Position numbers and translations under genes: made by a program
Assembly (NCBI GenBank): GCA_002269645.1
Contig: NIVC01001409.1
Location: 1-64,000 of the forward strand
Source of the DNA: Macrostomum lignano
Lineage: Eukaryota
Reading direction: 5' to 3'
DNA length: 64,000 nt
Notes under the pieces: model-generated
What the model saw: the letters and a program-made list of their open reading frames with translations, nothing else
Databases searched by the model: none
What the model was told of the DNA's origin: nothing
In this document: piece by piece, positions 7,395 through 60,545 of the stretch
How positions within the stretch are numbered: position 1 is the first letter of the stretch
How the letters are laid out: the number at the start of each line of letters is the position of its first letter

Positions 7395-7732
7395 GTCTGT
7401 GTCCTTAGATTTCTGTCTGTGTCCTTAGATTTCTGTCTGTGTCCTTAGATTTCTGTCTGTGTCCTTAGATTTCTGTCTGTGTCCGTAGATTTCTGTCTGT
7501 GTCCTTAGATTTCTGTCTGTGTCCTTAGATTTCTGTCTGTGTCCGTAGATTTCTGTCTGTGTCCTTAGATTTCTGTCTGTGTCCTTAGATTTCTGTCTGT
7601 GTCCTTAGATTTCTGTCTGTGTCCTTAGATTTCTGTCTGTGTCGGTAGCTTTCTGTCTGTGTCCTTAGATTTCTGTCTGTCGGTAGATTTCTGCCTGTGT
7701 CCGCAGATTTCTGTCTGTGTCGGTAGATTTCT
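7395..7732. repeat. 20-bp array GTCCTTAGATTTCTGTCTGT in ANKRD63-like intron 2
   Basis: Direct reading. Confidence 0.95.
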
Positions 7733-7855
7733 AGCGATGTCCCTCCGTCTGGCCTCTGTGGGTCTGCTTTTACTGCAGGCCTGTTACTTAAGAGGCTGCA
7801 GTAAAATGAACCCGCAATTTCATTTGGATTGGTGCCATTATCGACCCGGCCGCAG

Positions 7856-8402
7856 GCAACACTCCGCTGATGCACTGCGCCCGCGTCGGAAACGACTCCG
7901 GCATTGTGGTGCTGCTGAAGTGCTTCCGCCGGCTGGGCCTCGACCCGGACAGGTGCAACAGGGCTGGCTGCACCGCTCTGCTCATCGCCGCCCGCGGCGG
8001 GTTCCTCGAATGCGCCGGCCTGCTGGCCAGCGAGGGCCGCGCCTCGGTGACCCGGGCTGACCCGAGTTCGGGCGCAACCCCGAGCAATGGGCCCGGGCGC
8101 AGGGCTGCACCACGCCGGAGGTGGCGCCGTTCAGCGCCGACAGGCAGACGGCGGCCAGGCGAGGCCGGGGCGAACCCCTGCCGCTCGACGCCAGCGGCAG
8201 CTGCAGCGAAGTGGACGACGATGACGACGACGATAGCGGATCATCGGCTTCGTCCGGCCCGACCGAGCGGGAGGCCCTCGGCGAGGTGCGGGCTTCCAGG
8301 AGCTCCACCCTGACCACGCGGGTTGGCAGCGTCGGCCGGGACGACGACTTCAGGAGCTCAGGAGAGGAGAACGGGCGGGCGAGAAGCGGCAGATCGAACT
8401 AG
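7856..8402 (+). CDS. ANKRD63-like exon 3 (one apparent 1-nt frameshift near 8080)
   Basis: ccgcAG acceptor, phase 1. GNTPLMHCARVGNDSGIVVLLKCFRRLGLDPDRCNRAGCTALLIAARGG resembles the ANKRD63 motif FRRLGLRLDRTNRAGLTALQLAAARG. The acidic tail is in a shifted frame and ends at TAG 8400-8402. Confidence 0.75.
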
Positions 8403-8848
8403 GGCTTGGGATTCAGGGAGAGTGGGGCTTGGGATTCAGGGAGAGTGGGGCTTGGGATTCAGGGAGAGTGGGGCTTGGGATTCAGGGAGAGTGGGGCTTG
8501 GGATTCAGAGAGAGTGCAGGGGCTTGGGATTCAGGGAGAGTGGGACTTGGGATTCAGAGAGAGTGCAGGGGCTTGGGATTCAGGGAGAGTGGGACTTGGG
8601 ATTCAGGGAGAGTGCAGGGGCTTGGGATTCAGGGAGAGTGCAGGGGCTTGGGATTCAGGGAGAGTGCAGGGGCTTGGGATTCAGGGAGAGTGGGGCTTGG
8701 GATTCAGGGAGAGTGCAGGGGCTTGGGATTCAGAGAGAGTGCAGGGGCTTGGGATTCAGGGAGAGTGGGACTTGGGATTCAGGGAGAGTGAGGCTTGGTA
8801 TTGAGGGAGCTTGGGATTCAGGGAGAGTGGGGCTTAGGATTTAGGGAG
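8402..8848. repeat. 23/26-bp G-rich array GGGCTTGGGATTCAGGGAGAGTG(CAG)
   Basis: Direct reading; begins at the stop codon. Confidence 0.95.
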
Positions 8849-18688: not shown

Positions 18689-18784
18689 GTAAGACAGTTG
18701 GATTTGCTAAAATCAATCATGAAGCTAGAACCATTAATCAACTTGCTAGAATCATTATCACTCACATCACTAGAATAATCAATA

Positions 18785-19912
18785 ACATCACTTGAATCAC
18801 CAGTCACTGCTAGAATCATCAATCACATCGCTAGAATCATCAATCACATCGCTAGAATCATCAATCACATCACTAGAATCATCAATCACATCGCTAGAAT
18901 CATCAATCACACCGCTAGAATCATCAATCACATCGCTAGAATCATCAATCACATCGCTAGAATCATCAGTCACATCGCTAGAATCATCAATAACATCGCT
19001 AGAATCATCAATCACACCGCTAGAATCATCAATCACATCGCTAGAATCATCAATCACACCGCTAGAATCATCAGTCACATCGCTAGAATCATCAATCATA
19101 TCGCTAGAATCATCAATCACATCGCTAGAATCATCAATCACATCGCTAGAATCATCAATCACACCGCTAGAATCATCAATCACATCGCTAGAATCATCAA
19201 TCACATCGCTAGAATCATCAATCACATCGCTAGAATCATCAATCACACCGCTAGAATCATCAGTCACATCGCTAGAATCATCAATCATATCGCTAGAATC
19301 ATCAATCACATCGCTAGAATCATCAATCACATCGCTAGAATCATCAATCACACCGCTAGAATCATCAATCACATCGCTAGAATCATCAATCACATCGCTA
19401 GAATCATCAATCACATCGCTAGAATCATCAATCACACCGCTAGAATCATCAGTCACATCGCTAGAATCATCAATAACATCGCTAGAATCATCAATCATAT
19501 CGCTAGAATCATCAATCACATCGCTAGAATCATCAATCACATCGCTAGAATCATCAATCACATCGCTAGAATCATCAATCACATCACTAGAATCATCAAT
19601 CACATCGCTAGAATCATCAATCACACCGCTAGAATCATCAATCACACCGCTAGAATCATCAGTCACATCGCTAGAATCATCAATAACATCGCTAGAATCA
19701 TCAATCATATCGCTAGAATCATCAATCACATCGCTAGAATCATCAATCACACCGCTAGAATCATCAATCACATCGCTAGAATCATCAATCACACCGCTAG
19801 AATCATTAATAACATCGATAGAATCATCAATCACATCGCTAGAATCATCAATAACATCGATAGAATCATCAATCACATCGCTAGAATCATCAATCACATC
19901 GCTAGAATCATC
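18785..19912. repeat. 21-bp minisatellite CATCGCTAGAATCATCAATCA (RFC1 intron 2)
   Basis: Direct reading. Confidence 0.97.
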
Positions 19913-22332: not shown

Positions 22333-23643
22333 GCGAAGCCAAACAGCCTCAGCGGCATGACAATCGTGGTCACTGGCGTGCTGGACTACGTCGAGAAGGA
22401 GGCCTGCGAAGCTCTGCTGCATCAGTGCGGCGCCAAGGTTACCAAAAGCGTCAGCAAGCGAACCAGCATGCTGGTGGTCGGCCGGGAGCCCGGAGCCAGC
22501 AAGCTGGACAAGGCCAAGCAGGCCGGGGTTCGCTGCTGCCCGGAGAAGGAATTCTACAGTTTCCTGTGCGAGAAGCTTGGACAGCCGCCAGAAGCTGATC
22601 CAGACGATGAGGCGGTGGAAATGATGGGCGTCGAACCCGGAGCTGGAACTGGAGCCGGCGCTGATCAGCGCAGCAATGGATCCTCGGGTGCTAGAGATGT
22701 GGAGCGCAGCGGAGGTGGCAGAAGCCACGCTGAGGAGCGCAGCGGCGGCGGCAGAAGCCAGGCTGAGGAGCGCAGCGGCGGCGGCAGAAGCCAGGCTGAG
22801 GAGCGCAGCGGCGGCGGCAGAAGCCAGGCTGAGGAGCGCAGCGGCGGCGGCAGAAGCCAGGCTGAGGAGCGCAGCGGCGGCGGCAGAAACCAGGCTGAGG
22901 AGCGCAGCGGCGGCGGCAGAAGCCAGGCTGAGAGGCGCAGCGGCGGTGGCAGAAGCCAGGCTGAGGAGCGCAGCGGCGGCGGCAGAAGCCAGGCTGAGGA
23001 GCGCAGCGGCGGCGGCAGAAGCCAGGCTGAGGAGCGCAGCGGCGGCGGCAGAAGCCAGGCTGAGGAGCGCAGCGGAGGCGGCAGAAGCCAGGCTAAAGAT
23101 CAGAGAGAGGGCGGGAAAGCCGGAGCGGAGGGCCAGCCGCAGCAGCAGCTGATGTGGGTGGACAAATACAAGCCGCGCTCGCTGAAGCAGATAATCGGCC
23201 AGTCTGGTCCGGCCAGCTGTGCCAGCAAGCTGGTGGCCTGGCTGTCCAGCTGGCACAGGCACCTGGCCAGCGGGGTGAAGCGCGGCGTGGCGCAGCCGTT
23301 TCAGCGCTTCAACAACGACGGCTCCGCCTTGAAGGCGGCGCTGCTGTCCGGTCCGCCCGGCATCGGCAAGACGACCACCGCCACTCTGGCCTGCAAGGAG
23401 CTCGGCTTCGAGTGCCTGGAGTTGAACGCCTCGGACACTCGCAACAAAAGATCTCTGCACGAGATTGTCGGCGAAGCGCTGGGCACCTTTTCTGTTGGCG
23501 CCATGTTCGGCGGCGGCGGTGGCGGAGGCGGCACCGAGGAAGGTCGCCGACGCTGCATCGTTATGGATGAGGTGGACGGCATGGCCGGCAACGAGGACCG
23601 GGGCGGAGTGGCCGAGCTCATCCAGCTGATCAAGGCCAGCCAG
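22333..23643 (+). CDS. RFC1: RFC1 exon 5: BRCT domain, repeat linker, AAA+ core
   Basis: BRCT (MTIVVTGVLDYVEKEACEALLHQCGAKVTKSVSKRT), LMWVDKYKP, Walker A GPPGIGKT, ELNASD, Walker B MDEVDGM; GTACGG donor. Confidence 0.97.
22700..23098 (+). repeat. Coding 33-bp minisatellite (EERSGGGRSQA, about 12 copies) inside RFC1 exon 5
   Basis: In frame between BRCT and the WVDKYKP box; no convincing splice sites around it. Confidence 0.85.
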
Positions 23644-23719
23644 GTACGGCGTGTACTTTTGTGAATTTTGCGGCGCACCTGGATCTCAAACCGAAGCTTT
23701 TCTATTGGGTCTGTCCTGA

Positions 23720-27499: not shown

Positions 27500-27529
27500 G
27501 TGACCGTTGAACCTGTGCTGTCTGGGCTG

Positions 27530-28459
27530 TGACCAGTCACTGATCAGCTATGACCAGTCACTGATCAGCTATGACCAGTCACTAATCGGCTATGACCAGT
27601 CACTAATCGGCTATGACCAGTCACTGATCAGCTATGACCAGTCACTGATCAGCTATGACCAGTCACTGATCAGCTATGACCAGTCACTGATCAGCTATGA
27701 CCAGTCACTGATCAGCTATGACCAGTCACTAATCAGCTATGACCAGTCACTGATCAGCTATGACCAGTCACTGATCAGCTATGACCAGTCACTGATCAGC
27801 TATGACCAGTTACTGATAAGCTATGACCAGTCACTGATCAGCTATGACCAGTCACTGATCAGCTATGACCAGTCACTGATCAGCTATGACCAGTTACTGA
27901 TAAGCTATGACCAGTCACTGATCAGCTATGACCAGTCACTGATAAGCTATGACCAGTCACTGATCAGCTATGACCAGTCACTGATCAGCTATGACCAGTC
28001 ACTGATCAGCTATGACCAGTCACTGATCAGCTATGACCAGTTACTGATAAGCTATGACCAGTCACTGATCAGCTATGACCAGTCACTGATCAGCTATGAC
28101 CAGTCACTGATCAGCTATGACCAGTCACTGATCAGCTATGACCAGTCACTGATCAGCTATGACCAGTCACTGATCAGCTATGACCAGTCACTGATCAGCT
28201 ATGACCAGTCACTGATCAGCTATGACCAGTCACTGATCAGCTATGACCAGTCACTGATCAGCTATGACCAGTCACTGATCAGCTATGACCAGTCACTGAT
28301 CAGCTATGACCAGTCACTGATCAGCTATGACCAGTCACTGATCAGCTATGACCAGTCACTGATCAGCTATGACCAGTCACTGATCAGCTATGACCAGTCA
28401 CTGATCAGCTATGACCAGTCACTGATCAGCTATGACCAGTCACTGATCAGCTATGACCA
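27530..28459. repeat. Highly homogeneous 21-bp minisatellite TGACCAGTCACTGATCAGCTA (RFC1 intron 8)
   Basis: Direct reading. Confidence 0.98.
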
Positions 28460-28515
28460 GTTCTTTCCGCACTAAATGCAGCTGAATACGGCACAGCCAA
28501 ACAACCCGCATTCAG

Positions 28516-29879: not shown

Positions 29880-30903
29880 CTGTCAGCTGTTTCACTGGCA
29901 GCGATTTTACTGTCACCTATTTCACTGTCCGCTATTTCACTGTCACCGATTTCACCGTCAGCTGTTTCACTGTCAGCTGTTTCACTATCAGCGATTTTAC
30001 TGTCAGCTGTTTCACTGTCAGCTGTTTCACTGTCAGCTATTTCACTGTCAGCTGTTTCACTATCAGCTGTTTCACTATCAGCGATTTTACTGTCAGCTGT
30101 TTCACTGTCAGCTGTTTCACTGTCAGCTGTTTCACTGTCAGCTGTTTCACTGTCACCTGTTTCACTGTCACCTGTTTCACTGTCAGCTGTTTCACTGTCA
30201 CCTGTTTCACTGTCAGCTATTTCACTGTCAGCTGTTTCACTGTCAGCTTTTTCACTGTCAGCTGTTTCACTGTCAGCTGTTTCACTGTCACCTGTTTCAC
30301 TGTCACCTGTTTCACTGTCAGCTGTTTCACTGTCACCTGTTTCACTGTCAGCTATTTCACTGTCACCTGTTTCACTGTCACCTGTTTCACTGTCACCTGT
30401 TTCACTGTCAGCTATTTCACTGTCAGCTGTTTCACTGTCAGCTGTTTCACTGTCAGCTGTTTCACTGTCACCTGTTTCACTGTCAGCTATTTCACTGTCA
30501 GCTGTTTCACTGTCAGCTTTTTCACTGTCAGCTGTTTCACTGTCAGCTGTTTCACTGTCACCTGTTTCACTGTCACCTGTTTCACTGTCAGCTGTTTCAC
30601 TGTCACCTGTTTCACTGTCAGCTATTTCACTGTCACCTGTTTCACTGTCACCTGTTTCACTGTCACCTGTTTCACTGTCAGCTATTTCACTGTCAGCTGT
30701 TTCACTGTCAGCTGTTTCACTGTCAGCTGTTTCACTGTCACCTGTTTCACTGTCAACTGTTTCACTGTCAGCTATTTCACTGTCACCTGTTTCACTGTCA
30801 CCTGTTTCACTGTCAGCTGTTTCACTGTCAGCTGTTTCACCGTCATCTGTTTCACTGTCAGCTTTTTCACTGTCAGCTGTTTCACTGTCAGCTGTTTTAC
30901 TGA
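29880..30903. repeat. 15-bp minisatellite CTGTTTCACTGTCA(G/C)
   Basis: Direct reading; downstream of the RFC1 poly(A) signal. Confidence 0.97.
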
Positions 30904-31700: not shown

Positions 31701-31799
31701 ATGTTAAAAATCCGACAATCTAACAGCTCAGCAGTTGCCATCCGACAGGTGAAGAAACGGCCACCCGCAGGGATGTCAAACTCCAACAACAGCATAAAA
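31701..31799 (+). CDS. Possible upstream exon of the Arg-rich protein
   Basis: In-frame ATG at 31701, GTAAGT donor at 31800 (phase 0) pairing with the tttcAG acceptor at 31994; the intervening 195 nt are also open in frame. Confidence 0.4.
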
Positions 31800-31994
31800 G
31801 TAAGTCCGTTTCGGGGCCTCCGAAATTCAATCCAGTCAGCACCGAAACAGCTCAAACATGAGACTTATTCTGTTGGCAGCTTGCGCCGCGCTGCTTTGCA
31901 CGCTAGTGGTAAGTTGAACTCTGTTGCACACAACTATTCAGCACTAACTCCAGCTTCAATTCGAATAATTACGAAAATCATTTGCACTTTTCAG

Positions 31995-34900
31995 CTCTCA
32001 GCGCCACCACCAAATGCGAAGAATAAGCTGAAGAAGCCAGCAGCCGCTAACGCTGCGGCCACCGCTGGATCCGCTAAGAAGCCCGCTATGGCTCAGAAGC
32101 CTTGCAAAAGACCGCCAAGGAGGAGCGCAGAGGAAAGACGGGGCAGAAGAAGCGAGAGGCGGAGTCGCCGCCAATCCAGGCGGCAGAACCGACGCGCCGC
32201 AAGACGTGCCCGCAGAAGCCGCGATGTGAGAAGAGGTGGTCGTCGTGTCAGACGCGCCAGACGTAACGGTAGACGTGCTGCAAGACGTGCTCGCAGAAGC
32301 CGCGATGTGAGAAGAAGAGGCGGCCGTCGTGTCAGACGCGCCAGACGTAACGGTAGACGCGCTGCAAGACGTGCCCGCAGAAGCCGCGATGTGAGAAGAG
32401 GCGGCCGTCGTGTCAAACGCGCCAGACGTAACGGTAGACGCGCTGCAAGACGTGCCAGACGTAACGGTAGACGTGCTGCAAGACGTGCTCGCAGAAGCCG
32501 CGATGTGAGAAGAGGCGGCCGTCGTGTCAAACGCGCCAGACGTAACGGTAGACGCGCTGCAAGACGTGCCAGACGTAACGGTAGACGCGCTGCAAGACGT
32601 GCCCGCAGAAGCCGCGATGTGAGAAGAAGAGGCGGCCGTCGTGTCAGACGCGCCAGACGTAACGGTAGACGCGCTGCAAGACGTGCCCGCAGAAGCCGCG
32701 ATGTGAGAAGAAGAGGCGGCCGTCGTGTGAGACGCGCCAGACGTACCGGTAGACGCGCTGCAAGACGTGCCCGCAGAAGCCGCGATGTGAGAAGAAGAGG
32801 CGGCCGTCGTGTGAGACGCGCCAGACGTAACGGTAGACGCGCTGCAAGACGTGCCAGACGTAACGGTAGACGCGCTGCAAGACGTGCCCGCAGAAGCCGC
32901 GATGTGAGAAGAAGAGGCGGCCGTCGTGTCAGACGCGCCAAACTTAACGGTAGACGCGCTGCAAGACGTGCCAGACGTAACGGTAGACGCGCTGCAAGAC
33001 GTGCCCGCAGAAGCCGCGATGTTAGAAGAAGAGGCGGCCGTCGTGTGAGACGCGCCAGACGTACCGGTAGACGCGCTGCAAGACGTGCCCGCAGAAGCCG
33101 CGATGTGAGAAGAAGAGGCGGCCGTCGTGTCAGACGCGCCAGACGTAACGGTAGACGTGCTGCAAGACGTGCCCGCAGAAGCCGCGATGTGAGAAGAAGA
33201 GGCGGCCGTCGTGTGAGACGCGCCAGACGTAACGGTAGACGCGCTGCAAGACGTGCCAGACGTAACGGTAGACGCGCTGCAAGACGCGCCCGCAGAAGCC
33301 GCGATGTGAGAAGAAGAGGCGGCCGTCGTGTGAGACGCGCCAGACGTAACGGTAGACGCGCTGCAAGACGTGCCAGACGTAACGGTAGACGCGCTGCAAG
33401 ACGTGCCCGCAGAAGCCGCGATGTGAGAAGAAGAGGCGGCCGTCGTGTCAGACGCGCCAGACGTAACGGTAGACGCGCTGCAAGACGTGCCCGCAGAAGC
33501 CGCGATGTGAGTAGAGGCGGCCGTCGTGTGAGACGCGCCAAACGTAACGGTAGACGCGCTGCAAGACGTGCCAGACGTAACGGTAGACGCGCTGCAAGAC
33601 GTGCCCGCAGAAGCCGCGATGTGAGAAGAAGAGGCGGCCGTCGTGTGAGACGCGCCAGACGTAACGGTAGACGCGCTGCAAGACGTGCCCGCAGAAGCCG
33701 CGATGTGAGAAAAAGAGGCGGCCGTCGTGTCAGACGCGCCAGACGTAACGGTAGACGCGCTGCAAGACGTGCCCGCAGAAGCCGCGATGTGAGAAGAGGC
33801 GGCCGTCGTGTCAGACGCGCCAAACTTAACGGTAGACGCGCTGCAAGACGTGCCAGACGTAACGGTAGACGCGCTGCAAGACGTGCCAGACGTAACGGTA
33901 GACGCGCTGCAAGACGTGCCCGCAGAAGCCGCGATGTGAGAAGAAGAGGCGGCCGTCGTGTCAGACGCGCCAGACGTAACGGTAGACGCGCTGCAAGACG
34001 TGCCCGCAGAAGCCGCGATGTGAGTAGAGGCGGCCGTCGTGTGAGACGCGCCAAACGTAACGGTAGACGCGCTGCAAGACGTGCCAGACGTAACGGTAGA
34101 CGCGCTGCAAGACGTGCCCGCAGAAGCCGCGATGTGAGAAGAAGAGGCGGCCGTCGTGTGAGACGCGCCAGACGTAACGGTAGACGCGCTGCAAGACGTG
34201 CCCGCAGAAGCCGCGATGTGAGAAAAAGAGGCGGCCGTCGTGTCAGACGCGCCAGACGTAACGGTAGACGCGCTGCAAGACGTGCCCGCAGAAGCCGCGA
34301 TGTGAGAAGAGGCGGCCGTCGTGTCAGACGCGCCAAACTTAACGGTAGACGCGCTGCAAGACGTGCCAGACGTAACGGTAGACGCGCTGCAAGACGTGCC
34401 CGCAGAAGCCGCGATGTGAGAAGAAGAGGCGGCCGTCGTGTGAGACGCGCCAGACGTACCGGTAGACGCGCTGCAAGACGTGCCCGCAGAAGCCGCGATG
34501 TGAGAAGAGGCGGCCGTCGTGTGAGACGCGCCAGACGTAACGGTAGACGCGCTGCAAGACGTGCCAGACGTAACGGTAGACGCGCTGCAAGACGCGCCCG
34601 CAGAAGCCGCGATGTGAGAAGAAGAGGCGGCCGTCGTGTGAGACGCGCCAGACGTAACGGTAGACGCGCTGCAAGACGTGCCAGACGTAACGGTAGACGC
34701 GCTGCAAGACGTGCCCGCAGAAGCCGCGATGTGAGAAGAAGAGGCGGCCGTCGTGTGAGACGCGCCAGACGTACCGGTAGACGCGCTGCAAGACGTGCCC
34801 GCAGAAGCCGCGATGTGAGAAGAAGAGGCGGCCGTCGTGTGAGACGCGCCAGACGTAACGGTAGACGCGCTGCAAGACGTGCCAGACGTAACGGTAGACG

Positions 34901-35237
34901 CGCTGCAAGACGTGCCCGCAGAAGCCGCGATGTGAGAAGAAGAGGCGGCCGTCGTGTGAGACGCGCCAGACGTAACGGTAGACGCGCTGCAAGACGTGCC
35001 CGCAGAAGCCGCGATGTGAGAAGAAGAGGCGGCCGTCGTGTGAGACGCGCCAGACGTAACGGTAGACGCGCTGCAAGACGTGCCAGACGTAACGGTAGAC
35101 GCGCTGCAAGACGCGCCCGCAGAAGCCGCGATGTGAGAAGAAGAGGCGGCCGTCGTGTGAGACGCGCCAGACGTAACGGTAGACGCGCTGCAAGACGTGC
35201 CAGACGCAACCGCAGGCGCGCTGCAACACGCGGTTAA
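31995..35237 (+). CDS. Giant arginine-rich repetitive protein, protamine-like (candidate sperm nuclear basic protein)
   Basis: Over 3.2 kb open frame. K/A/P-rich leader, then 84/81-bp units (RRAARRARRSRDVRR(R)GGRRVRRARRNG, 16/28 Arg) with optional 33-bp modules. All indels seen are multiples of 3. Unique non-repeat N- and C-ends; TAA at 35235-35237; AATAAA at 35300-35305. Confidence 0.7.
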   Translation, partial: LSAPPPNAKNKLKKPAAANAAATAGSAKKPAMAQKPCKRPPRRSAEERRGRRSERRSRRQSRRQNRRAARRARRSRDVRRGGRRVRRARRNGRRAARRARRSRDVRRRGGRRVRRARRNGRRAARRARRSRDVRRGGRRVKRARRNGRRAARRARRNGRRAARRARRSRDVRRGGRRVKRARRNGRRAARRARRNGRRAARRARRSRDVRRRGGRRVRRARRNGRRAARRARRSRDVRRRGGRRVRRARRTGRRAARRARRSRDVRRRGGRRVRRARRNGRRAARRARRNGRRAARRARRSRDVRRRGGRRVRRAKLNGRRAARRARRNGRRAARRARRSRDVRRRGGRRVRRARRTGRRAARRARRSRDVRRRGGRRVRRARRNGRRAARRARRSRDVRRRGGRRVRRARRNGRRAARRARRNGRRAARRARRSRDVRRRGGRRVRRARRNGRRAARRARRNGRRAARRARRSRDVRRRGGRRVRRARRNGRRAARRARRSRDVSRGGRRVRRAKRNGRRAARRARRNGRRAARRARRSRDVRRRGGRRVRRARRNGRRAARRARRSRDVRKRGGRRVRRARRNGRRAARRARRSRDVRRGGRRVRRAKLNGRRAARRARRNGRRAARRARRNGRRAARRARRSRDVRRRGGRRVRRARRNGRRAARRARRSRDVSRGGRRVRRAKRNGRRAARRARRNGRRAARRARRSRDVRRRGGRRVRRARRNGRRAARRARRSRDVRKRGGRRVRRARRNGRRAARRARRSRDVRRGGRRVRRAKLNGRRAARRARRNGRRAARRARRSRDVRRRGGRRVRRARRTGRRAARRARRSRDVRRGGRRVRRARRNGRRAARRARRNGRRAARRARRSRDVRRRGGRRVRRARRNGRRAARRARRNGRRAARRARRSRDVRRRGGRRVRRARRTGRRAARRARRSRDVRRRGGRRVRRARRNGRRAARRARRNGRRAARRARRSRDVRRRGGRRVRRARRNGRRAARRARRSRDVRRRGGRRVRRARRNGRRAARRARRNGRRAARRARRSRDVRRRGGRRVRRARRNGRRAARRARRNRRRAATRG

Positions 35238-36503
35238 ATGGAGTGTTTCCACGATAGCCATATGATTCGGTTTTGGACCTTTCTTTTGTGGGTGTTTTAA
35301 ATAAATGTTGGTTTATTTAAAATGTTGGTCATACGATGCTCGTACCTATTCTGTGTTTCTTTGTTTGCTTTTTCAATTTTATTGCTGGAAATCTGAAATC
35401 GGCCACCTTTTTTCAGCATGCGAGTTTCTGCAAACTGCGATATCGAGAAAATCTGATATGCGTTGCCTGAAATTTGATTGTACATGTAGAAGTACAGAAA
35501 ATTAAACCACTTTTGTTTGGTGTGATCGGCCAATGAATATATAATTATGTTTTGTGCCATTGTTATGCAATAATTTATAAATTTATTCCATAAGTGACAA
35601 GTAAAATGCGAACGAAAATTAACAGCAAAACAGCGAAAATTTTGTGTGTCCTCAAATTAGAATTTAAAATGAGCGAGTCAAACTAACAGACCAGTTAGTT
35701 CTAATTCGGTAAAATACATGTTGTTCACGTTTTTATCATTGCTTGGAAATATAACGATTTAACGTTATAGATATTAAGTTTCTTTAGTGTGCTGGTGAAC
35801 GCATCTCTGTCCTCCCGTCTGAATCAGATTTCCAGCTTTTGAGTTCTGGATCCCAAATTTATCTCTGTTATCTCAAAGCCTAGGTTTGGAACTCGGAAGG
35901 GCGACTAGTGCCCTAGCTTTAAATTTTATTTAGGAAACTCTTACACACACCTGGTCGTAAATCAATGTTATTAAGGTAACAATCATACTTTAATAGCATA
36001 ATTTGATAGTTTTACATCGCCTTATTGGCAATTCCTGTCTGAAAGCCAGATATGCTGGAGTGTTGAGTCGTCGGGGCAGATGAGCGTGGTCAGGGGCAGG
36101 CAGAGAGACTGAAAAGTAGAGCACACATTTATAAATGAACGGCATGCTGCGAGAGAGAGGACGAAAACTTCTCTTTACCATGGTATCGTTCCCGGGCAGG
36201 GGTTTCAGTGTACATGGCTTGGGGGGTGGGGGTAAAATTCTAACCCCAACCCTGCCTTCAACAAACGTACATTAAAAGCGCTCTAGCCGTCTGCCGTCTG
36301 TGGCCTTGCCCAAGTGTCCTATGTACATCTATTTGATTTCATTCTCTTACCAGTGTGTGGACCGCCCTTCCCTCCCCCACTAGGCTTAGAAAAGATTCCA
36401 CGGCAGCTAAACATGACGTGTCAGTAGAGACCTTTTTTCTCAATTCAATAACGTTGGCCTAACTGGCATAACTGCCTATTCTACTCGTGTATTTGAATTA
36501 AAA

Positions 36504-37166
36504 ATGAACTTCAATCTATTGATACTTTTGTCCCTATTGGGCGCGGCCACTGCGTTCGACAAATATCCGAAAGAATTTGTTTTCGAGCTACCAGATAATG
36601 AGGAATTTTGCTTCTACGAGGAATTCGCGCAGGACGCCGCAAAAGAAGCGTTTAACACAGTGTTCCGCGTGATTCGCGGCGGTAACAATGACGTGGACTT
36701 TGCAATCACTGCTCCGGACAACCAGAAAGTTTACGAGAAGCAGAAGCAACACTTTGATGAGCACGAGCACACTTTCCGTCCTGGCACTTATTCCTTCTGC
36801 TTTGGCAACAAGTTTTCAACCATCACGCACAAGCAGATCTACTTCGCCCTGAACCGCAAACGGCCGGAAAGTCTGGCTGAAGAGGCCGGAGCAACCAACG
36901 TACCGACAGCAATGTCTCTGCTGCAGACCAAGATGGAGGCCATCCACGAATATCTGGTCACTGTGGAGACGGTGCAGTCAATCTACAAGGTGCGCGAAGC
37001 CGAGGGACGCGAGATTAGCGAGGATCTGAACGAGCGCGTCATGGTATTCAGCGCCATTCTGGCCATGGCTGTGGTGGTTTGCGGCTTCGGACAGGTTGTG
37101 GTGCTCAGGACTTTCTTCTCAGACAAAAAATCCGTCTCTTATCCTCGCTATCCTACCAAGGCCTGA
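36504..37166 (+). CDS. p24/TMED family cargo receptor (gamma subfamily, TMED3/TMED7-like), intronless
   Basis: Signal peptide; GOLD domain (FELPDNEEFCFYE...GGNNDVDF...GTYSFCFGNKFSTITHKQIYF); coiled coil; TM helix; FF-KK-like tail. Confidence 0.93.
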   Translation: MNFNLLILLSLLGAATAFDKYPKEFVFELPDNEEFCFYEEFAQDAAKEAFNTVFRVIRGGNNDVDFAITAPDNQKVYEKQKQHFDEHEHTFRPGTYSFCFGNKFSTITHKQIYFALNRKRPESLAEEAGATNVPTAMSLLQTKMEAIHEYLVTVETVQSIYKVREAEGREISEDLNERVMVFSAILAMAVVVCGFGQVVVLRTFFSDKKSVSYPRYPTKA

Positions 37167-40902: not shown

Positions 40903-41664
40903 AGTGCATGGGTCGATCGAATCGAACCCCCGACCTTTCAATCGTGATTCCGACCATAAGCGTAGGAACGTTTCAAAAAGTGGGGGGCAGGTTCAGTGAC
41001 AGATTTAGGGGGGGGGCACAGGGTGCACGCCCCATCGAGTTATATTTTTTTATACGGAAAATGCACATTATCATGTACCGATTATTTTCAGAATCAGTCA
41101 GCAGTCAGAAACTCATTTTATAAAGCACCGCAGGCACTCATTTTAGCGCCGTAGGCCCGCATTTTGGCGCCGCAGGCCCTTATTTTAGCGCCGCAGGCAC
41201 TCATTTTGGCGCCGCAGGCACTCATTTTTTAGCGCCGCAGGCACTCATTTTGGCGCTGCAGGCACTCATTTTGGCGCCGCAGGCCCTCATTTTAGCGCGG
41301 CAGGCACTCATTTTAGCGCCGCAGGAACTCATTTTGGCGCCGCAGGCACTCATTTTGGCGCCGCAGGCCCTCATTTTGGCGCCGCAGGCCCTCATTTTAG
41401 CGCCGCAGACACTCATTTTAGCGCCGCAGGCACTCAATTTGGCGCTGCAGGCGCTATGTTTTGTCGCCCTGCAGCAAAATGTATTCATGCAAAGCAGAAA
41501 AAAACCAAAAATAAGCAAGAAGTCTACATTTTACACTTAAAATGTGGAGGGGCCAGATACCATTACTGGCCCCCCCCCATTTTAGAAAGTGGGGGGGCAT
41601 GCCCCACTGCCCGCCCCCGTTCCTACGCCTATGATTCCGACGCTCTAGCCACTAGGCTAGGCTA
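40903..41664 (-). mobile_element. tRNA-derived SINE head (or tRNA pseudogene) split by a hAT MITE
   Basis: Removing 40955-41641 gives, on the minus strand, TAGCCTAGTGG (A box)...TCGGAATCACGATTGAAAGGTCGGGGGTTCGATTC (B box); no paired acceptor stem. Confidence 0.6.
40955..41633. mobile_element. hAT-type MITE carrying an internal 21-bp array
   Basis: TIRs CATAAGCGTAGGAACG / CGTTCCTACGCCTATG (15/16); exact TSD ATTCCGAC (40947-40954, 41634-41641); GCACTCATTTTGGCGCCGCAG array at ~41130-41455. Confidence 0.9.
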
Positions 41665-43489
41665 CAACCGGAATGCATTCATATTGCTAATAGCTCGGAT
41701 ATTTGAAGTTTAAAAATACAACTTCAACTTTAAATATTTGAGAATAAATTTTATCTTCGAACCCTTTGTATACAGAGACCGGCACTTCGGCATGCACATG
41801 CAAAACCAACTTATTACATAATGCAGTGAAGTGCCACGCGCTCCAACTCAAAGTCAAAAGCATAATAAGCATTAAGCAACAGACTACCGCCCGGTCCATC
41901 GATGGGATGGGACGGGATGGTTCAGAAGTCGGGAGGATATTATCACCTATCCTCCTCAATCCCTAATCCTCATCCTCATATTCCACGGAATCCACGTCAA
42001 TAACAATAACACTTAGGGTTCAAGCTTCACATGGAACAGATGGAATTTTATTGTTGAATAAAATCAACAAGTTGACACACAACTGAGGCGCGATCCAGAT
42101 TCTCGTATGGCTTTGCGTTTTGGACATTGAATGATGGTGTAGTTATTCGTAATCTTATCAATAATCCTATATACTAAAAGTAAAAATCTTGCTTGCTTGC
42201 TTGTAAAATATTCTTAATTTCTAGTCAAATTATAGAATAGAATGTTATTCATGATTCAAGAGAAGGTACAGACAGGTGGGCGGTTGGTAAATGCGATTCT
42301 GTGACTGTGAGTGAATCAATGAGTGTCCCTAGTCCCTGCTTACACTCACATTCACACATTACCTGTATGTCAGATTTGACAACTTGATGGTTCTTGACTG
42401 TAACTGTAACAGACTTCATTTATCATTATAGCCTACAACTACAATCCAGTCTGCTGCACCGTTATAAAACACTGCCCTGTTACTCGTAGTCATGAATCTA
42501 GTTTAACTTGATTATTTATAAACAAAGCTGAGGAACCAATAAGAATTAATTCAAATTAAATTGTTTCAAACAAATAAATTAAATACAAATACACTAACTT
42601 ACATATAATGCAATAACATAGTATAATATTACATGTACAAAGGCGTGAACAAGTTATTTTGGTTGGATTTTATACGTACACTTTCTACTGTCTTATTTGT
42701 CTCAGGGCTTATCTATGGGCACTGAGAGTCATAAAATCACTTTAAACCTCTTGGGGTAAATGAAATAGATTAGGCCCTCCTTTCCCTTTCGTCTTTGACT
42801 AGGTGGAGCTCCCTTCCTATCCTCGCCTGCCGATTGGTTGAGGGTGTCATTAAATCTCGGGCTTTGACCAGCCAATTAAAGAAGCGCGCCGGCCAAAGGA
42901 AAGCTGAAGGGGGAACCAGTCAGTCTAACTGAATAAAAGCCTTGCCAGTGCCCAGCACAGATTTCAATACCAAACCAATAAGAACAAAATCAGGCTACTA
43001 TAATTAAGTTAAATTAACTATACACTCGTGCGAGTATATTGTAAACAGCTTGTTAAAAAGCGATCGATTTTGAATTCAAGACTCAACGCGTTCTATCTCA
43101 CTAATGTAAGTGTTTATTTATCTATCTGGTATTTATCTATCTGGTATTCTTTACAACAGTTCATATACATAAATTTTAGGTGCTCTCTTAATTTAGATTT
43201 AGAACTTCCTGTAAATTACTACGAGGAATTATTGAATTAATGCCAATGGGTTTAATGGCTAGGGCCTATAATATTACTTACAAGTTACTATACTCAATGC
43301 GGTATAAATATAAAACGATTAGAGATTGGAAACTCTGTTTAACCTCTGTTCTCTTCAGCATCAGGCAATCTCCGGGGCGTCGACAGTTAGGACTTCTACT
43401 CGTACATTAATGGAATCGGAGTGTACCCTCTCCCGGGCATTATACTTATGCATGCATGTAATGAGTGCTTGCTTATCCCCCCGCCCATT

Positions 43490-43915
43490 CTACACAGTGG
43501 AGTGCTACCCTCCCCGGCCATTCTACACAATGGAGTGCTACTGCTACCCTCCCCGGCCATTCTACACAATGGAGTGCTACTGCTACCCTCCCCGGCCATT
43601 CTACACAATGGAGTGCTACTGCTACCCTCCCCGGCCATTCTACACAATGGAGTGCTACTGCTACCCTCCCCGGTCATTCTACATAATGGAGTGCTACCCT
43701 CCCCGGCCATTCTACATAATGGAGTGCTACCCTCCCCGGCCATTCTACATAATGGAGTGCTACCCTCCCCGGCCATTCTACATAATGGAGTGCTACCCTC
43801 CCCGGCCATTCTACACAATGGAGTGCTACCCTCCCCGGCCATTCTACATAATGGAGTGCTACCCTCCCCGGCCATTCTACACAATGGAGTGCTACCCTCC
43901 CCGGCCATTCTACAT
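43490..43915. repeat. 33/39-bp array GGAGTGCTAC(TGCTAC)CCTCCCCGGCCATTCTACACAAT, probably in a 5'UTR intron
   Basis: Direct reading; upstream of the acceptor at 44076. Confidence 0.93.
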
Positions 43916-44087
43916 ATTAATGCTACACTTGCTATTTACAATAAAGGTGCTCCCCTCCGGAACATGCAGTCAGTCTGTATCAAGAATGCGGAACTTTATA
44001 CATGAGTTGACGCCCCGCCCCAAGCATCCAACATTGTTACATGTACATCACAATACCGTATTTTCCCAATTCCCAGCAGCGGCCATC

Positions 44088-45053
44088 ATGCAGCAACAAC
44101 TCCTGCAGCAGATCAACGGCAGTGCAGGAGTAGCAAAGCGGCTGCACACCGACTCTGAAGACCAATCCGACACCGACTTGTCTGATAGTGAAGGCCGACT
44201 CGTCATCGACATGTCCAACTCCGCCTGCTCGACCAGCATCAATGTCACCGACTGCACTGAAAACGACATCCCAACGCCGCCGCCAGCGCCGCCTCCGTCG
44301 ATTCAGCCGAAGATAAAGTCTTCTGTTGACGAAAGTTGCACCTTCAACAGATGGTGGCTGACGACAGAGCAGCATTCATCAGCAGAATCTCAACAAGCAT
44401 CTCCACTGCCGGTGCAGATGCCGCCCCGTGTCCCAAAAACAGAAAGCAGCAGCGACTGGTGGTCCCAGTGGAACCTGCAGCAGCAGCAGCAGCAGCAGCA
44501 CCAGCAGCAATCTTCTCGGCGTTGGGGCCCGCCCCAGACTGTCAGCGACAGGCTGTGTGCCTGCATCGGTTGCGCCGTCGGCAGCTGGCCCTGTCGGGCC
44601 TGGCAGCCACAGCAGCCGCTTCAACCGCGGCATCAATCAGCGGGGTTTCAGCCAGTCGGATGGCAGTTCTCGCCGCCTTTAGCGCCACCACCCCAGCCGC
44701 CCGCATTGGCGTCTCAGCAGCAGGCAGCAATGGAGCCGCAGGCTAAAAGAAGTTGCGACCAGCCTCAAAGCATCGGGAACTTCGAATGCCGCTGGTGCAA
44801 CGCCGATCCGTTCCGTAGCTGTCGCCAGCTGGCGCAGCACATTCAGCGCGTCCACCAGCTGGCTAGCGGAGCCTGCGGCGTCTGCGGCTCGGCCAGGGTT
44901 GGACCCGGCCACTGCCGGCAGCACGCGGCCGAGTGTCTGACCGCGACCGGCCGGTCAGCCTTCCTCTGCGCCGCCTGCGAGGGCAGGATTTTCGCGTCCC
45001 GCTCCGCCTTGAAGCGGCACACCGAGCGGCACCACCGCAGCGGCAGGAGGTGA
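44088..45053 (+). CDS. C2H2 zinc-finger protein with Q/P-rich N-terminal region
   Basis: ttcccAG acceptor at 44076, ATG at 44088. Fingers CRWC...LAQHIQRVH and CAAC...LKRHTERHH, plus a degenerate CGVC...CRQH. AATAAA at 45303. Confidence 0.8.
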   Translation: MQQQLLQQINGSAGVAKRLHTDSEDQSDTDLSDSEGRLVIDMSNSACSTSINVTDCTENDIPTPPPAPPPSIQPKIKSSVDESCTFNRWWLTTEQHSSAESQQASPLPVQMPPRVPKTESSSDWWSQWNLQQQQQQQHQQQSSRRWGPPQTVSDRLCACIGCAVGSWPCRAWQPQQPLQPRHQSAGFQPVGWQFSPPLAPPPQPPALASQQQAAMEPQAKRSCDQPQSIGNFECRWCNADPFRSCRQLAQHIQRVHQLASGACGVCGSARVGPGHCRQHAAECLTATGRSAFLCAACEGRIFASRSALKRHTERHHRSGRR

Positions 45054-45829: not shown

Positions 45830-46892
45830 TACAACACCCCCGTTTCCGCTTGCCCTGATCATTACACCCCCGTTTCCGCTTACCTGATCATTACACCCCG
45901 TTTCCGCTTACCTGATCATTACACCCCCGTTTCCGCTTACCTGATCATTACACCCCCGTTTCCGCTTACCTGATCATTACACCCCCGTTTCCGCTTGCCC
46001 TGATCATTACACCCCCGTTTCCGCTTACCTGATCATTACACCCCCGTTTCCGCTTACCCTGATCATTACACCCCCGTTTCCGCTTGCCCTGATCATTACA
46101 CCCCCGTTTCCGCTTGCCCTGATCATTACACCCCCCGTTTCCGCTTGCCCTGATCATTACACCCCCCGTTTCCGCTTGCCCTGATCATTACACACCCCCG
46201 TTTCCGCTTGCCCTGATCATTACACCCCCGTTTCCGCTTGCCCTGATCATTACACCCCCGTTTCCGCTTGCCCTGATCATTACACCCCCCGTTTCCGCTT
46301 GCCCTGATCATTACACCCCCGTTTCCGCTTGCCCTGATCATTACACCCTCCGTTTCCGCTTGCCCTGATCATTACACCCTCCGTTTCCGCTTGCCCTGAT
46401 CATTACACACCCCCGTTTCCGCTTGCCCTGATCATTACACCCCCGTTTCCGCTTGCCCTGATCATTACACCCCCGTTTTCGCTTGCCCTGATCATTACAC
46501 CCCCGTTTCCGCTTGTCCTGATCATTACACACCCCCGTTTCCGCTTGCCCTGATCATTACACCCCCGTTTCCGCTTACCTGATCATTACACCCCCGTTTC
46601 CGCTTGTCCTGATCATTACACACCCCCGTTTCCGCTTGCCCTGATCATTACACCCCCGTTTCCGCTTGCCCTGATCATTACACCCCCGTTTCCGCTTGCC
46701 CTGATCATTACACCCCCGTTTCCGCTTGCCCTGATCATTACACCCCCGTTTCCGCTTGTCCTGATCATTACACACCCCCGTTTCCGCTTGCCCTGATCAT
46801 TACACCCCCGTTTCCGCTTGCCCTGATCATTACACCCCCGTTTCCGCTTGTCCTGATCATTACACACCCCCGTTTCCGCTTGCCCTGATCAT
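45830..46892. repeat. ~30-bp minisatellite ACACCCCCGTTTCCGCTTGCCCTGATCATT
   Basis: Direct reading; lies between convergent gene ends. Confidence 0.97.
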
Positions 46893-47030
46893 TGCAACCT
46901 GTCTCTACAATTCTGCATCCTGTACAGCCCCACGCAGGTCATGGTGACAGTGGAGTCACAGTGATCTGCTCGGTCAGAGCGTATTTTGAAAAAGCAGATC
47001 AACAGCCAAAGCATCTCTCGGGTCTCAGGG

Positions 47031-47534
47031 CTACTGACTGCTGAAGAAGTCAGCGTCAAATCCGCTGCTGACGACCAGCTCCGACTCCTTCTGCATGTCC
47101 TCCTTGATCTTCTGGATTGCAGCGCTGTCCGCGGTCTGCTGTTGCTGCTGCTCTGGCATCTGCGGAGGCGGCGGAGGCAGCGGCGGCGGCGGCGGCATTG
47201 ACGGGCCCGCCATCATGCGAGGGTCCTGCTGCTGCTGCTGCTGCGGCCAGGGCGGAGCCATCATCTGACCGCTGAAGCCGCCGCCGGAGCCGGGCCCGGT
47301 TGATCTCGGCGGCGGCGGCCGATACAGCCCCGGGCCGCCGGGCTGCTGCGGTGGCGGCGGCAGCCGCTGCTGCCCTCCGTTCGGCCCGACTGCCGGGCCT
47401 CTGACGCCGCTCGGCGACGACTGGGGTGGCATTGGCGGCGGCGGCGGAGGCGGCGGGAAGAAATCACCCGGCGGCGGCGGCGGTGGGTGCATCGATGGTG
47501 GCGGCGGAGGACCGCCGCAGGTGTTGGAAAAGTT
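47031..47534 (-). CDS. SSDP: SSDP/SSBP2-4 family, terminal exon 4 (Pro-rich)
   Basis: ctgcAG acceptor, phase 0; NFSNTCGG, poly-Pro, SAAIQKIKEDMQKE; TAG. Confidence 0.8.
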   Translation of the reverse strand, partial: NFSNTCGGPPPPPSMHPPPPPPGDFFPPPPPPPPMPPQSSPSGVRGPAVGPNGGQQRLPPPPQQPGGPGLYRPPPPRSTGPGSGGGFSGQMMAPPWPQQQQQQDPRMMAGPSMPPPPPLPPPPPQMPEQQQQQTADSAAIQKIKEDMQKESELVVSSGFDADFFSSQ

Positions 47535-47619
47535 CTGCAGAGCGAGTCGATGCGCGCGAATTGAAATACAGGTATGTTTAAACACTGAGAGTCTGGGAAA
47601 GCACACCACCGGCACTCAC

Positions 47620-53957: not shown

Positions 53958-55535
53958 TCACTCGGCAGCGCCAACGGGGCTGCCATTCCGCAGCTGTTCC
54001 GGCTCCGACTTCAGCTCGCCGCGGCTGCCGGCCACCGTCCAGATTGGCGGCGACGCTGATGGCGAGTCGCTGGCGCCACCGCCGCTGCTGCTCATCGACA
54101 CCGCGGCCGCGGCGGCTGCTGCTGCGGCTGCGGCTGCGGCGGCCGAAGGCTTGAGGCCGGCCGCCCACATCTGCTGTAGACCGGCCATGGGCACCATAGA
54201 CGGGAAGCAGCCCAGGTGGCCGGAGTGCGGCGGCAGCGTCTGCTGATGCTGCGAGCCGGCCAGCAGGGCCTCAGCCGACGGGCTGTGGGCGGGCGCCGGC
54301 CTCAGCGAGAAGTGCATCTTCAGGTGCGACATGATGTTGCTGACCACCGGGTACCGGTTCTTGGCCACGGAGAAGCGCACCGCAGAGGTGCGGTCCCGCT
54401 TCACCTTGCACAGGTGGCAGTGGTACACCCCCGACACCCGGCGGCCGCCGTCCTCGCCGCCAGGCTGCACCTCCAACTGAATGTCGAAGTCGACGCCCTC
54501 GGTGAGCTGGGCGGAGTCGAACTGCTTGGAGCTGAGCCTCAGCACGGAGGCAGCCGACCTGGCCCGCAGTTTCTCCAGGTCCACATCGCCGCCACAGCTG
54601 ATGCCGAAGTCCGCCAGCATCAGCGCCTGGGAGCCGTCGGGCGGGGAGCCCGCAACGCCGTTGCCACCGCCGCCGGTGCCTCCAACAGCTGCGCCAGCGG
54701 TCGAGGTGTCGCCGGAGACCGACGACGGCGTTTCGTCTGGAGTCAGCGGAGCCCGCGGCTGGGATGGCGGCGGCGGCGGCTGCTGGGGTTGATGGTGATG
54801 AAGACGCAGAGGCTGAGTTACAGGCAGCTGAGCCTGCTGAGTCGGGGAGCTTTGCTGCTGTTGCTGCTGTCTTCTAGCAGATGTAACTTGCTGCTGCTGC
54901 TGCTGTTGCTGCTTGCTAGTGAAGGCAGGCAATCCCAGCGGGTGCGATTGAAGATGATGATGCTGTTGCTGCTGCTGTTGTTGCTGCTGCTGCTGTTGCT
55001 GTTGGATCTGGTTGAAGAAATCCGAGATGCCGCCAGCGCCAACGCCGCCACCGCCGCCGCCGACGCCGCCCGCCATTACCGGCAGGGGCGGCAGGGGGAA
55101 GCCGCAGAGGGCGGGGTGGCCGCCAAGGCTCATGCAGGCCGCCAGGAGCTGCTGCTGCGCCTCCGCTGACAGGGCCTCCAGCCCGGTGCTCAGCTGCGGC
55201 TGCGGCGGACTCTCGGACTCAGACTCGGTCTGCGTGGCCTTGTCCAGCCGCTCCCGTAGTCCCTGTACGCCCACCAGGATGCCCTTCCTCGTCCCGGCCG
55301 GGAAGCGGAACTGGTCCGGACAGTCGGCGAAAATCTGGCCGACGTAAGCGACCCGCTCCTCCTGCGGCATCAGCTGACAGGCGTCGCGGACGAAGCGCTC
55401 AACGTTGTCGATCTCGGCGTCCGTCAGGCCCTGCAGGACGCGGGCGTTGGCGTAGCCGCAGAGCTCCAGGCAGTTGATGGCGGCGCTGGACTGGCCGGTG
55501 TAGCGGCCGAGCAGCTCTCGGCAGGTGTCGTCCAT
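53958..55535 (-). CDS. Uncharacterised Q/A/P-rich protein (525 aa) with an N-terminal helical domain and a BED-like C2H2 finger
   Basis: ccctacAG acceptor just upstream of ATG 55535; GC-rich codon style like the neighbouring genes; YHCHLC-x-SNIMSHLKMH finger; poly-Q and poly-A tracts. Confidence 0.8.
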   Translation of the reverse strand: MDDTCRELLGRYTGQSSAAINCLELCGYANARVLQGLTDAEIDNVERFVRDACQLMPQEERVAYVGQIFADCPDQFRFPAGTRKGILVGVQGLRERLDKATQTESESESPPQPQLSTGLEALSAEAQQQLLAACMSLGGHPALCGFPLPPLPVMAGGVGGGGGGVGAGGISDFFNQIQQQQQQQQQQQQQQHHHLQSHPLGLPAFTSKQQQQQQQQVTSARRQQQQQQSSPTQQAQLPVTQPLRLHHHQPQQPPPPPSQPRAPLTPDETPSSVSGDTSTAGAAVGGTGGGGNGVAGSPPDGSQALMLADFGISCGGDVDLEKLRARSAASVLRLSSKQFDSAQLTEGVDFDIQLEVQPGGEDGGRRVSGVYHCHLCKVKRDRTSAVRFSVAKNRYPVVSNIMSHLKMHFSLRPAPAHSPSAEALLAGSQHQQTLPPHSGHLGCFPSMVPMAGLQQMWAAGLKPSAAAAAAAAAAAAAAVSMSSSGGGASDSPSASPPIWTVAGSRGELKSEPEQLRNGSPVGAAE

Positions 55536-60115: not shown

Positions 60116-60545
60116 CAGGGACGTCGCCACCAGGGGGGGACAGGGGGGGGACATGTCCTCTCAGTAAAGTCTATGGGGGCACATGCCAGTGCTTTGTTCG
60201 TTATGGAAATCAATAATTTTGCTTCAGGGCGACAAAATATAGCGCCTGCGGGCTGCGGCACTAAAATGAGTTCCTGCGGCGCCAAAATGAACGCCTGCGG
60301 CGCCAAAATAGTGCCTGTGGCGACAAAATGAGTGCCTGCGGCGCCAAAATGAATGCCTGCGGCGCCAAAATGAGTGCCTGCGGCGCCAAAATGAATGCCT
60401 GCGGCGCCAAAATGAGTGCCTGCGGCGCCAAAATGAGCGCTGACAACACCGATTCTGAAAATAAGGTACATGTAGGAATTTTGACATGTACATGTAGAAC
60501 TCTTGGCTTTGTCCCCCCGCCATAAAATCCATGGCGACGCCCCTC
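60116..60545 (-). mobile_element. MITE with internal 21-bp array (same core as 40955-41633)
   Basis: Imperfect TIRs CAGGGACGTCGCCA / TGGCGACGCCCCT; CTGCGGCGCCAAAATGAGTGC array at ~60245-60440; no TSD found. Confidence 0.7.

Follow-up and report, generated by a model that had tools for sequence, protein, structure and literature searches.

An arginine-rich tandem-repeat gene of Macrostomum lignano whose predicted product is a candidate secreted polycation

In the cohesive glue protein Mlig-ap1 of the flatworm Macrostomum lignano, Lys/Arg-rich regions with an isoelectric point (pI) above 14 account for more than 3,600 residues, and adhesion is lost in the presence of heparin (PMC6410801). Stand-alone polycations, known as ap3, have been described in other flatworms. 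Tmed-ap3 of Theama mediterranea is 3,700 amino acids (aa) long and is composed of a signal peptide followed by GRKHS low-complexity sequence, with a pI of 13.2 (PMC9229212). In Minona ileanae, RNA interference (RNAi) of Mile-ap3 leaves the adhesive vesicles without their electron-dense core (PMC6745481). For both the Lys/Arg-rich regions of Mlig-ap1 and the stand-alone ap3 proteins, a polyanion-condensing mechanism has been proposed (PMC6410801, PMC9229212, PMC6745481). Here, a gene of M. lignano is described that encodes a giant, Arg-rich repeat protein of comparable architecture. It is located in a window of 64,000 nucleotides, which is the whole stretch of DNA that was analyzed and which is taken from contig NIVC01001409.1 of the Mlig_3_7 assembly (GCA_002269645.1); window coordinates are those of the record. 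The locus very probably holds a real protein-coding gene on the plus strand. Its product would, on balance, be expected to act as a secreted polycation that condenses polyanions, and this is far likelier than a role as a giant sperm protamine.

Two further systems are relevant. Protamines and protamine-like sperm nuclear basic proteins (SNBPs) are nuclear, lack a signal peptide and are typically 30–100 aa long. Their Arg content is about 50% or more, the Arg runs are broken by G, S, V or A, and the PL-I types carry an H1 globular domain. In the sandcastle worm, the polybasic cement proteins Pc1, Pc2, Pc4 and Pc5 pair with the polyphosphoserine protein Pc3 in complex coacervates. As in the scheme favored here, these are secreted, repetitive polycations that are packed with polyanions in granules and condense by charge. 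They are, however, small, rich in Lys, His, Gly and Tyr, contain 3,4-dihydroxyphenylalanine (DOPA), and have no known sequence relationship to the M. lignano protein. The original prediction for this locus, made by a model from the letters of the window, favored the nuclear comparison: it placed a candidate mega-protamine at 31701–35305, a very large sperm-chromatin or other structural basic protein that is possibly processed into repeat peptides.

A real gene on the plus strand is supported by the annotation, the gene structure, the paralogous loci, the indel pattern and the unit substitutions taken together. The GenBank record calls a plus-strand gene at 31837–35237. Gene annotation of Mlig_3_7 was built from RNA-seq transcripts only, using strand-aware assembly and open reading frames (ORFs) called by TransDecoder (PMC5730564). 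The gene is present in the M. lignano genome in at least three near-identical copies. Two paralogous loci, L002 (NIVC01001187.1) and L003 (NIVC01002996.1), were recovered from the same assembly via the neighboring TMED gene, and at both the gene order RFC1, Arg-rich gene, TMED is kept. L002 and L003 also keep the signal-peptide exon, the 86-bp intron, the leader and the TAA stop of the window gene. The annotated product of L003, which is 465 aa long, corresponds exactly to (7263–7346)+(7433–8746), that is, to the gene with the 86-bp intron removed. As this product spans the GT-AG intron, the annotators' transcripts use it, which fixes the plus strand. The intron also fits the M. lignano splice motifs GT[G/A]AG and CAG (PMC8629364). 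The annotated products of the other two copies, which are 880 aa in the window and 324 aa in L002, both imply extra "introns" inside the array. They were rejected as true isoforms and most likely stem from transcripts in which the repeats were collapsed; L003 is the only copy with a full-length annotation.

At the 5' side of the gene, the annotated ends of the three copies adjoin CAG motifs and could be either transcription start sites or spliced-leader trans-splice acceptors. The stretch that intervenes between them and position 31858 contains no ATG, and the ATG at 31858 stands in a favorable context (AAC ATG A). The start at ATG 31701 within an unspliced ORF was rejected: in L002, the exon-2 frame is interrupted upstream of 31650 by two indels, of 1 bp and 14 bp, and the 5' ends in the annotation fall at 31825–31840. 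The annotated model and the paralogs indicate instead the two-exon structure that is listed in Table 1. The remaining elements of the original prediction, namely the K/A/P-rich leader, the splice sites, the clean stop and an AATAAA downstream of it, are all present. Exon 2 opens with LSAPPPNAKNK..., and the leader of 65 aa, which is first K/A/P-rich and then R/S/E/Q-rich, holds the sole Cys of the mature chain.

The repeat array itself was parsed into the 84- and 81-bp units and optional 33-bp modules that had been predicted. Its modules encode RRAARRARR[SRDVRR(R)GGRRVRRARR]NG. The 84-bp unit has the consensus RRAARRARRSRDVRRRGGRRVRRARRNG, in which 16 of 28 residues are Arg, the 81-bp unit is the same sequence minus one AGA, and the 33-bp module encodes RRAARRARRNG. 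It was likewise borne out that all unit length variants are multiples of 3, that the remaining two plus-strand frames have stops in each unit, and that Arg codons are mixed (AGA 273, CGT 148, CGC 142). The claim of a single open frame did not hold. On the plus strand, the frame runs without a stop from 31476 up to the TAA at 35235–35237, but two minus-strand frames also span the whole array: an S/T/A-rich frame at 31998–35312 and an L/R-rich frame at 32093–35233. Tandem arrays of the window often have an open frame; a stop-free unit stays stop-free when copied. At least one fully open frame was found in 13 of the 26 larger tandem arrays of the window, and one 23-bp satellite is open in all three plus-strand frames. 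The 3-kb ORF effectively describes one 84-bp unit and is, therefore, no coding evidence by itself.

Comparison of the three copies provides evidence that is independent of ORF length. Module number is 46 in the window, 31 in L002 and about 22 in L003, an approximately two-fold spread that is always in frame. Across the copies, the leader varies by a single substitution (P>T) and a single 3-bp indel (AGA) that keeps the frame, and the indels of the arrays are 3, 33 and 51 bp long. All ORF indels are multiples of 3, and the three copies together, with about 6.9 kb of ORF, have no 1–2-bp indels, a test whose power is limited as module slippage alone yields multiples of three. In the flanks, most indels have lengths that are not divisible by three (1, 1, 1, 1, 2, 2, 4, 5, 8, 10, 14 and 14 bp, and others). 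In the 3' untranslated region (UTR) of the paralogs, for example, a 2-bp indel lies directly past the stop and a 14-bp indel is also present, both outside the ORF.

The substitutions among units tell a similar story. The comparison of synonymous with non-synonymous changes among units, which the original prediction had proposed as a check, showed that 14 of 25 distinct substitution variants are synonymous in the plus-strand frame versus 31% expected (binomial p=0.007); since the antisense L/R-rich frame shares third positions with it, this test alone cannot pick the strand and rejects only the S/T/A-rich frame. The latter, a "mucin"-like antisense candidate, has 4 synonymous versus 21 replacement variants. 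In the plus-strand frame, 4 of the 11 replacement variants are R>K. A neutral minisatellite is expected to take up indels and substitutions blindly with respect to frame and codon position, and the Arg-rich array does not behave in this way. Each copy also has its own unit variants: K, L, T and S variants in the window, including a block that recurs twice, RRTRR in L002 and L003, and RLARR and RRRSG in L003. These private variants point to rapid unequal exchange after duplication. The array would evolve via unequal exchange of whole modules, with selection maintaining both reading frame and positive charge.

After splicing, the gene would encode a precursor of 1,097 aa with a mass of about 133 kDa. 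It consists of 53% Arg, 17% Ala, 10% Gly and 1.6% Lys (R+K 54%), and its 572 Arg, 17 Lys, 30 Asp and 3 Glu residues give a net charge of about +556. The precursor is without aromatic residues, His or an N-glycosylation sequon; the mature chain has one Cys, and there is one Asp per long module, with the predicted Asp-N peptides of the plus-frame product being DVRRRGGRRVRRARRNGRRAARRARRSR. The N-terminus, MRLILLAACAALLCTLVLSA, is signal-peptide-like and has the standard layout of a cleavable secretory signal peptide. It begins with MR, residues 1–21 have a mean Kyte-Doolittle hydropathy >2, and the hydrophobic core of about 16 residues is followed by the small-residue motif V-L-S / L-S-A and a Pro-rich turn (LSA, PPP). 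A hydropathy scan found no second hydrophobic segment in the precursor. In a single-sequence AlphaFold prediction, the leader is disordered and the repeats form one continuous helix (predicted local distance difference test (pLDDT) score 80–93, predicted template modeling (pTM) score 0.28), which is taken here as a sign of the helix propensity of Ala and Arg and not as a structure.

Database searches with this sequence were empty. No Pfam domain was found in the first 202 aa of exon 2, and the remainder is pure repeat, so the absence of an H1 globular domain, already noted in the original prediction, was upheld. A protein search with signal peptide, leader and repeats (202 aa) gave 8,000 word candidates, none of which scored. 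A search with signal peptide and leader (82 aa) gave no match at E<=10, annotated proteins included, and the 65-aa leader had 0 matches among 1.84 billion representatives. A degenerate DNA pattern for RSRDVRRRGGRRVRR had 0 matches in metagenome contigs. Empty HMMER-based searches speak only weakly for the lack of a homolog, as they could be due to composition bias or to low-complexity proteins being absent from the index.

The closest resemblance is to the secreted polycationic repeat proteins of flatworm adhesive glands, namely ap3 and the KR regions of Mlig-ap1. Tmed-ap3 and Mile-ap3a/b are, like the protein described here, stand-alone chains in which a signal peptide is followed almost only by low-complexity repeats, with >50% basic residues and a pI above 13, and their genes are also hard to assemble from short reads (PMC9229212, PMC6745481). 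The basic share is nearly the same, with R+K at 54% here versus about 52% K+R in Tmed-ap3. In contrast, ap3 proteins are Gly/Arg/Lys(/His/Ser)-rich, have at least as much Lys as Arg and are 3–4 times longer, whereas the Arg-rich protein has very little Lys, contains Ala, Val and Asp, and is built from a well-defined 28-aa unit. KR-regions A–C of Mlig-ap1 share with it the species and extremely cationic repeats; they are secreted and interact with polyanions (PMC6410801), as would be expected of the Arg-rich protein. These regions, however, flank a lectin/vWD/EGF core in a protein of >5,000 aa and contain Lys and Pro (e.g., SRKPRRKNRKSRKP), while the Arg-rich gene occupies a small locus of its own, encodes no structured domain and has a consensus unit without Pro or Lys.

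As its architecture and charge density match those of the Mlig-ap1 KR regions and ap3, the same condensation mechanism is proposed for the Arg-rich protein. The chain would enter the endoplasmic reticulum (ER) via a cleavable signal peptide, and a gland cell would store and then release it as an intrinsically extended or helix-prone polycation. Here, the dense guanidinium groups would neutralize and cross-link polyanions. These could be glycans of a sulfated or acidic kind, phosphoproteins, or further acidic cargo of the secretory pathway. The polyanions would thereby be condensed into a dense granule core and, after release, would form part of a cohesive matrix that competing polyanions dissolve. 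This function is suggested by the architecture and by precedent within the phylum. Candidate sites are the adhesive organ or another gland, such as a prostate, cement, shell, rhabdite or mucus gland.

Several points weigh against a gene product of this kind. The signal peptide was called from hydropathy and the (-3,-1) pattern, a heuristic and not SignalP, and the residues just past the hydrophobic core are positively charged, which could favor a reversed signal-anchor topology. The 106 furin-type sites mean that the chain must escape proprotein convertases, as Mlig-ap1 and ap3 evidently do. Lys makes up about 28% of Tmed-ap3, so the "GRK" composition is not shared, and the likeness to ap3 and Mlig-ap1 is one of architecture and charge density. 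Both the expressing gland and the polyanion partner are things that we purely infer. At the level of the gene, the antisense L/R-rich frame ("-2") has 16 of 25 synonymous variants, its third positions coinciding with those of the plus frame, and the Arg codons of the neighboring genes are mostly CGG/CGC, unlike those of the Arg-rich gene. This atypical usage probably reflects amplification of one founder unit. Lastly, conservation among the copies is no lower in the intron and promoter than in the exons. In the 467 bp of the block 31724–32190, which comprises the TATA-like element, 5' UTR, exon 1, intron and leader, a single site varies among the three copies, versus 49 variable sites in 775 bp and many indels just upstream and about 3.6% in the downstream flank. 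Given that intron and exons vary equally little, this block may be the product of gene conversion spreading from the array, rather than of selection; regulatory constraint may also account for it.

Two readings of where and for what such a polycation would be used are tentative and of low probability. It could be an adhesive-organ protein that is made in the gland cells of the tail adhesive organ and contributes the cationic, cohesive phase of the temporary glue; to ap3 and the KR regions of Mlig-ap1, it would be a functional analog or a distant relation. The architecture is that of Tmed-ap3 and Mile-ap3, and the polycation mechanism has been demonstrated in M. lignano (PMC6410801). The published adhesion screens of this species, however, name only Mlig-ap1 and Mlig-ap2 as glue proteins, the Kringle-lysine model (PMC9229212) requires Lys, in which the Arg-rich protein is poor, and the Mlig-ap1 epitope SRKPRRKNRKSRKP has no counterpart because the repeats have no Pro. 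An equally tentative alternative is a new, non-adhesive class of extracellular, near-pure poly-arginine macromolecule that is associated with seminal fluid, mucus or eggs or, less likely, a giant sperm chromatin protein with an unconventional N-terminus. Such a class would bring protamine-like or cell-penetrating chemistry to the outside of the cell, where it would condense nucleic acids or other polyanions or enter partner or microbial cells. The giant protamine-like SNBP that was originally proposed, possibly cut into Arg-rich peptides that condense sperm chromatin, is improbable. Its Arg content and the DNA-condensing chemistry that would be available to it are those of a protamine, and motifs such as RRRGGRR are reminiscent of fish protamines. 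In addition, the sperm chromatin of M. lignano becomes strongly condensed, and the literature searched mentions no protamine for the species: nothing relevant was found on Macrostomum protamine, arginine-rich seminal proteins, flatworm SNBPs or rhabdite arginine. The exon at 31858–31908 that the original prediction missed, however, encodes the signal-peptide-like N-terminus, which directs a protein to the secretory pathway and not to the nucleus. The chain is also 10–30 times the size of a protamine, has no H1 or winged-helix domain, and nothing in this analysis points to testis expression. The predicted signal peptide, the size and the missing H1-type domain are all incompatible with a conventional protamine. 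The underlying claim of a very large Arg-rich repeat protein gene on the plus strand proved genuine, and "structural basic protein" is still a fair description.

Cleavage at basic sites bears on this proposal and on a related one, in which the secreted chain is a polyprotein precursor that proprotein convertases and carboxypeptidases digest to tiny peptides or free arginine, as a peptide signal or an arginine reserve. The signal peptide, 286 dibasic positions and 106 R-X-[KR]-R sites would suit such a precursor, and the NG-RR junctions look like amidation signals. Neuropeptide precursors and prohormones hold repeated peptides of at least about 4 residues between dibasic sites, whereas the segments here (AA, A, S, DV, GG, V, A, NG) are only 1–2 residues long. 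These are too short for known bioactive peptides and there is no conserved peptide core, and this reading is highly improbable; as the dense furin-type sites would leave just 1–2-residue fragments, processing into the repeat peptides of the original prediction is unlikely as well. Another way to read the N-terminus is as an uncleaved reverse signal anchor, with a cytosolic poly-Arg domain tethered to the ER or another membrane and binding, for example, RNA or acidic lipids. A more positive flank C-terminal to the core can invert topology, according to the charge-difference rule, and here this flank (NAKNKLKK...) is more positive than the N-terminal one (MR). The length of the core, the good V-L-S / L-S-A cleavage motif and the Pro-rich turn are, however, typical of cleaved signals, and comparable polycationic flatworm proteins have been predicted, and found, to be secreted, so that this topology is highly improbable. 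The same low probability applies to the absence of a functional plus-strand protein, where the array would be a transcribed minisatellite with an incidental ORF or the real product would come from the antisense L/R-rich frame. Minisatellites crowd the window and half of them have an open frame, and the two open antisense frames, the synonymous excess of frame "-2", the atypical Arg codons and the empty protein searches would all agree with this. Against it, the plus-strand ATG with its signal peptide, the GT-AG intron, the in-frame leader, the stop and the AATAAA are conserved in three copies, the transcript-based annotation uses the intron, and the antisense frames are without ATG, splice or poly(A) context. 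The substitutions in the S/T/A-rich frame and the contrast between ORF indels, which are in frame, and flank indels, most of which are not, argue in the same direction.

Table 1. Coordinates of the Arg-rich gene and of example minisatellite arrays in the window
Feature	Position	Strand	Basis or remark
TATA-like element CATAAAAG, putative promoter element	31793-31800	+	Read from sequence; ~25-45 nt upstream of annotated 5' ends
5' UTR	31825-31857	+	Annotated 5' ends of the three copies are window-equivalent 31825, 31837 and 31840
Coding exon 1, 17 codons, MRLILLAACAALLCTLV, n- and h-regions of the predicted signal peptide	31858-31908	+	Identical in all three copies
Intron, 86 bp, phase 0, GTAAGT...TTTTCAG	31909-31994	+	Sequence; L003 annotated product
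Exon 2 start: predicted signal-peptide end (LS/A), then unique 65-aa leader	31995-32189	+	Unit parsing, three-copy comparison
Tandem array, 45 modules: 22 x 84 bp, 8 x 81 bp, 15 x 33 bp	32190-35180	+	Tandem Repeats Finder (TRF), unit parsing, variant analysis
Degenerate 57-bp last module RRAARRARRNRRRAATRG and TAA stop (35235-35237)	35181-35237	+	Stop conserved in all three copies
3' UTR with poly(A) signal AATAAA at 35300-35305, 62-63 nt past stop	35238-35325	+	
Example minisatellite arrays	2750-3965, 18724-19912, 27526-28461, 29880-30902, 45834-46893, 61637-63278		

The surroundings of the gene are rich in repeats. Simple and tandem repeats make up 15% of the M. lignano genome (PMC5730564), and TRF identified dozens of minisatellites in the window, in agreement with this published share. 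Their density is extreme, with units of 14–46 bp and arrays of 0.2–1.6 kb, many of them within introns of RFC1. Directly upstream of the Arg-rich gene, at 29880–30902, is a 15-bp minisatellite (CTGTCAGCTGTTTCA) in which every plus-strand frame is open; it is also found at the matching position in L002 (4530–5270), where the copy number differs. RFC1, which encodes the large subunit of replication factor C, contains the second coding tandem repeat of the window. This is an in-frame 33-bp x 12 minisatellite at 22701–23094, within the plus-strand ORF 22357–23664, which encodes EERSGGGRSQA repeats in a single exon between the BRCT and AAA+ domains. On the other side of the Arg-rich gene lies the single-exon p24/TMED gene, at 36504–37166.

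Further downstream, a 21-bp satellite (AGCGCCGCAGGCACTCATTTT) forms two inverted arrays, at 41124–41452 and 60253–60437, which are ~19 kb apart and ~90% complementary. They could delimit a large inversion or a mobile element, or reflect the coincidental dispersal of one satellite family, and they bracket a region with zinc-finger-like and poly-Q ORFs. The unique plus-strand ORF at 43326–45053 (575 aa) has a weak C-terminal C2H2 zinc finger, and its 5' part crosses a 33-bp repeat (PRPFYTMECY...). The unique minus-strand ORF at 53958–55676 (572 aa) is poly-Q/poly-A-rich and has no Pfam match. Both are probably exons of real genes. A further minus-strand ORF, at 47031–47615, is proline-rich with PPPPPP runs and poly-Q, and resembles a formin- or WASP-type proline-rich region.

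The locus carries two cautions. In this minisatellite-rich genome, a long ORF within a repeat does not count as evidence for a gene, since spurious "proteins" are many, and an Arg-rich composition does not imply a protamine. The presence of 46, 31 and about 22 modules in one genome would also make this a tractable coding minisatellite under charge-preserving selection. Temporary adhesion of flatworms has been attributed to secreted polycations, which a polyanion switches off; those described so far are Lys/Arg/Gly-rich. If the reading as a secreted polycation is true, an Arg-only chain of 133 kDa with a clean 28-residue unit would widen that class, and the unit itself would provide a simple natural sequence for the design of coacervates and bio-glues.

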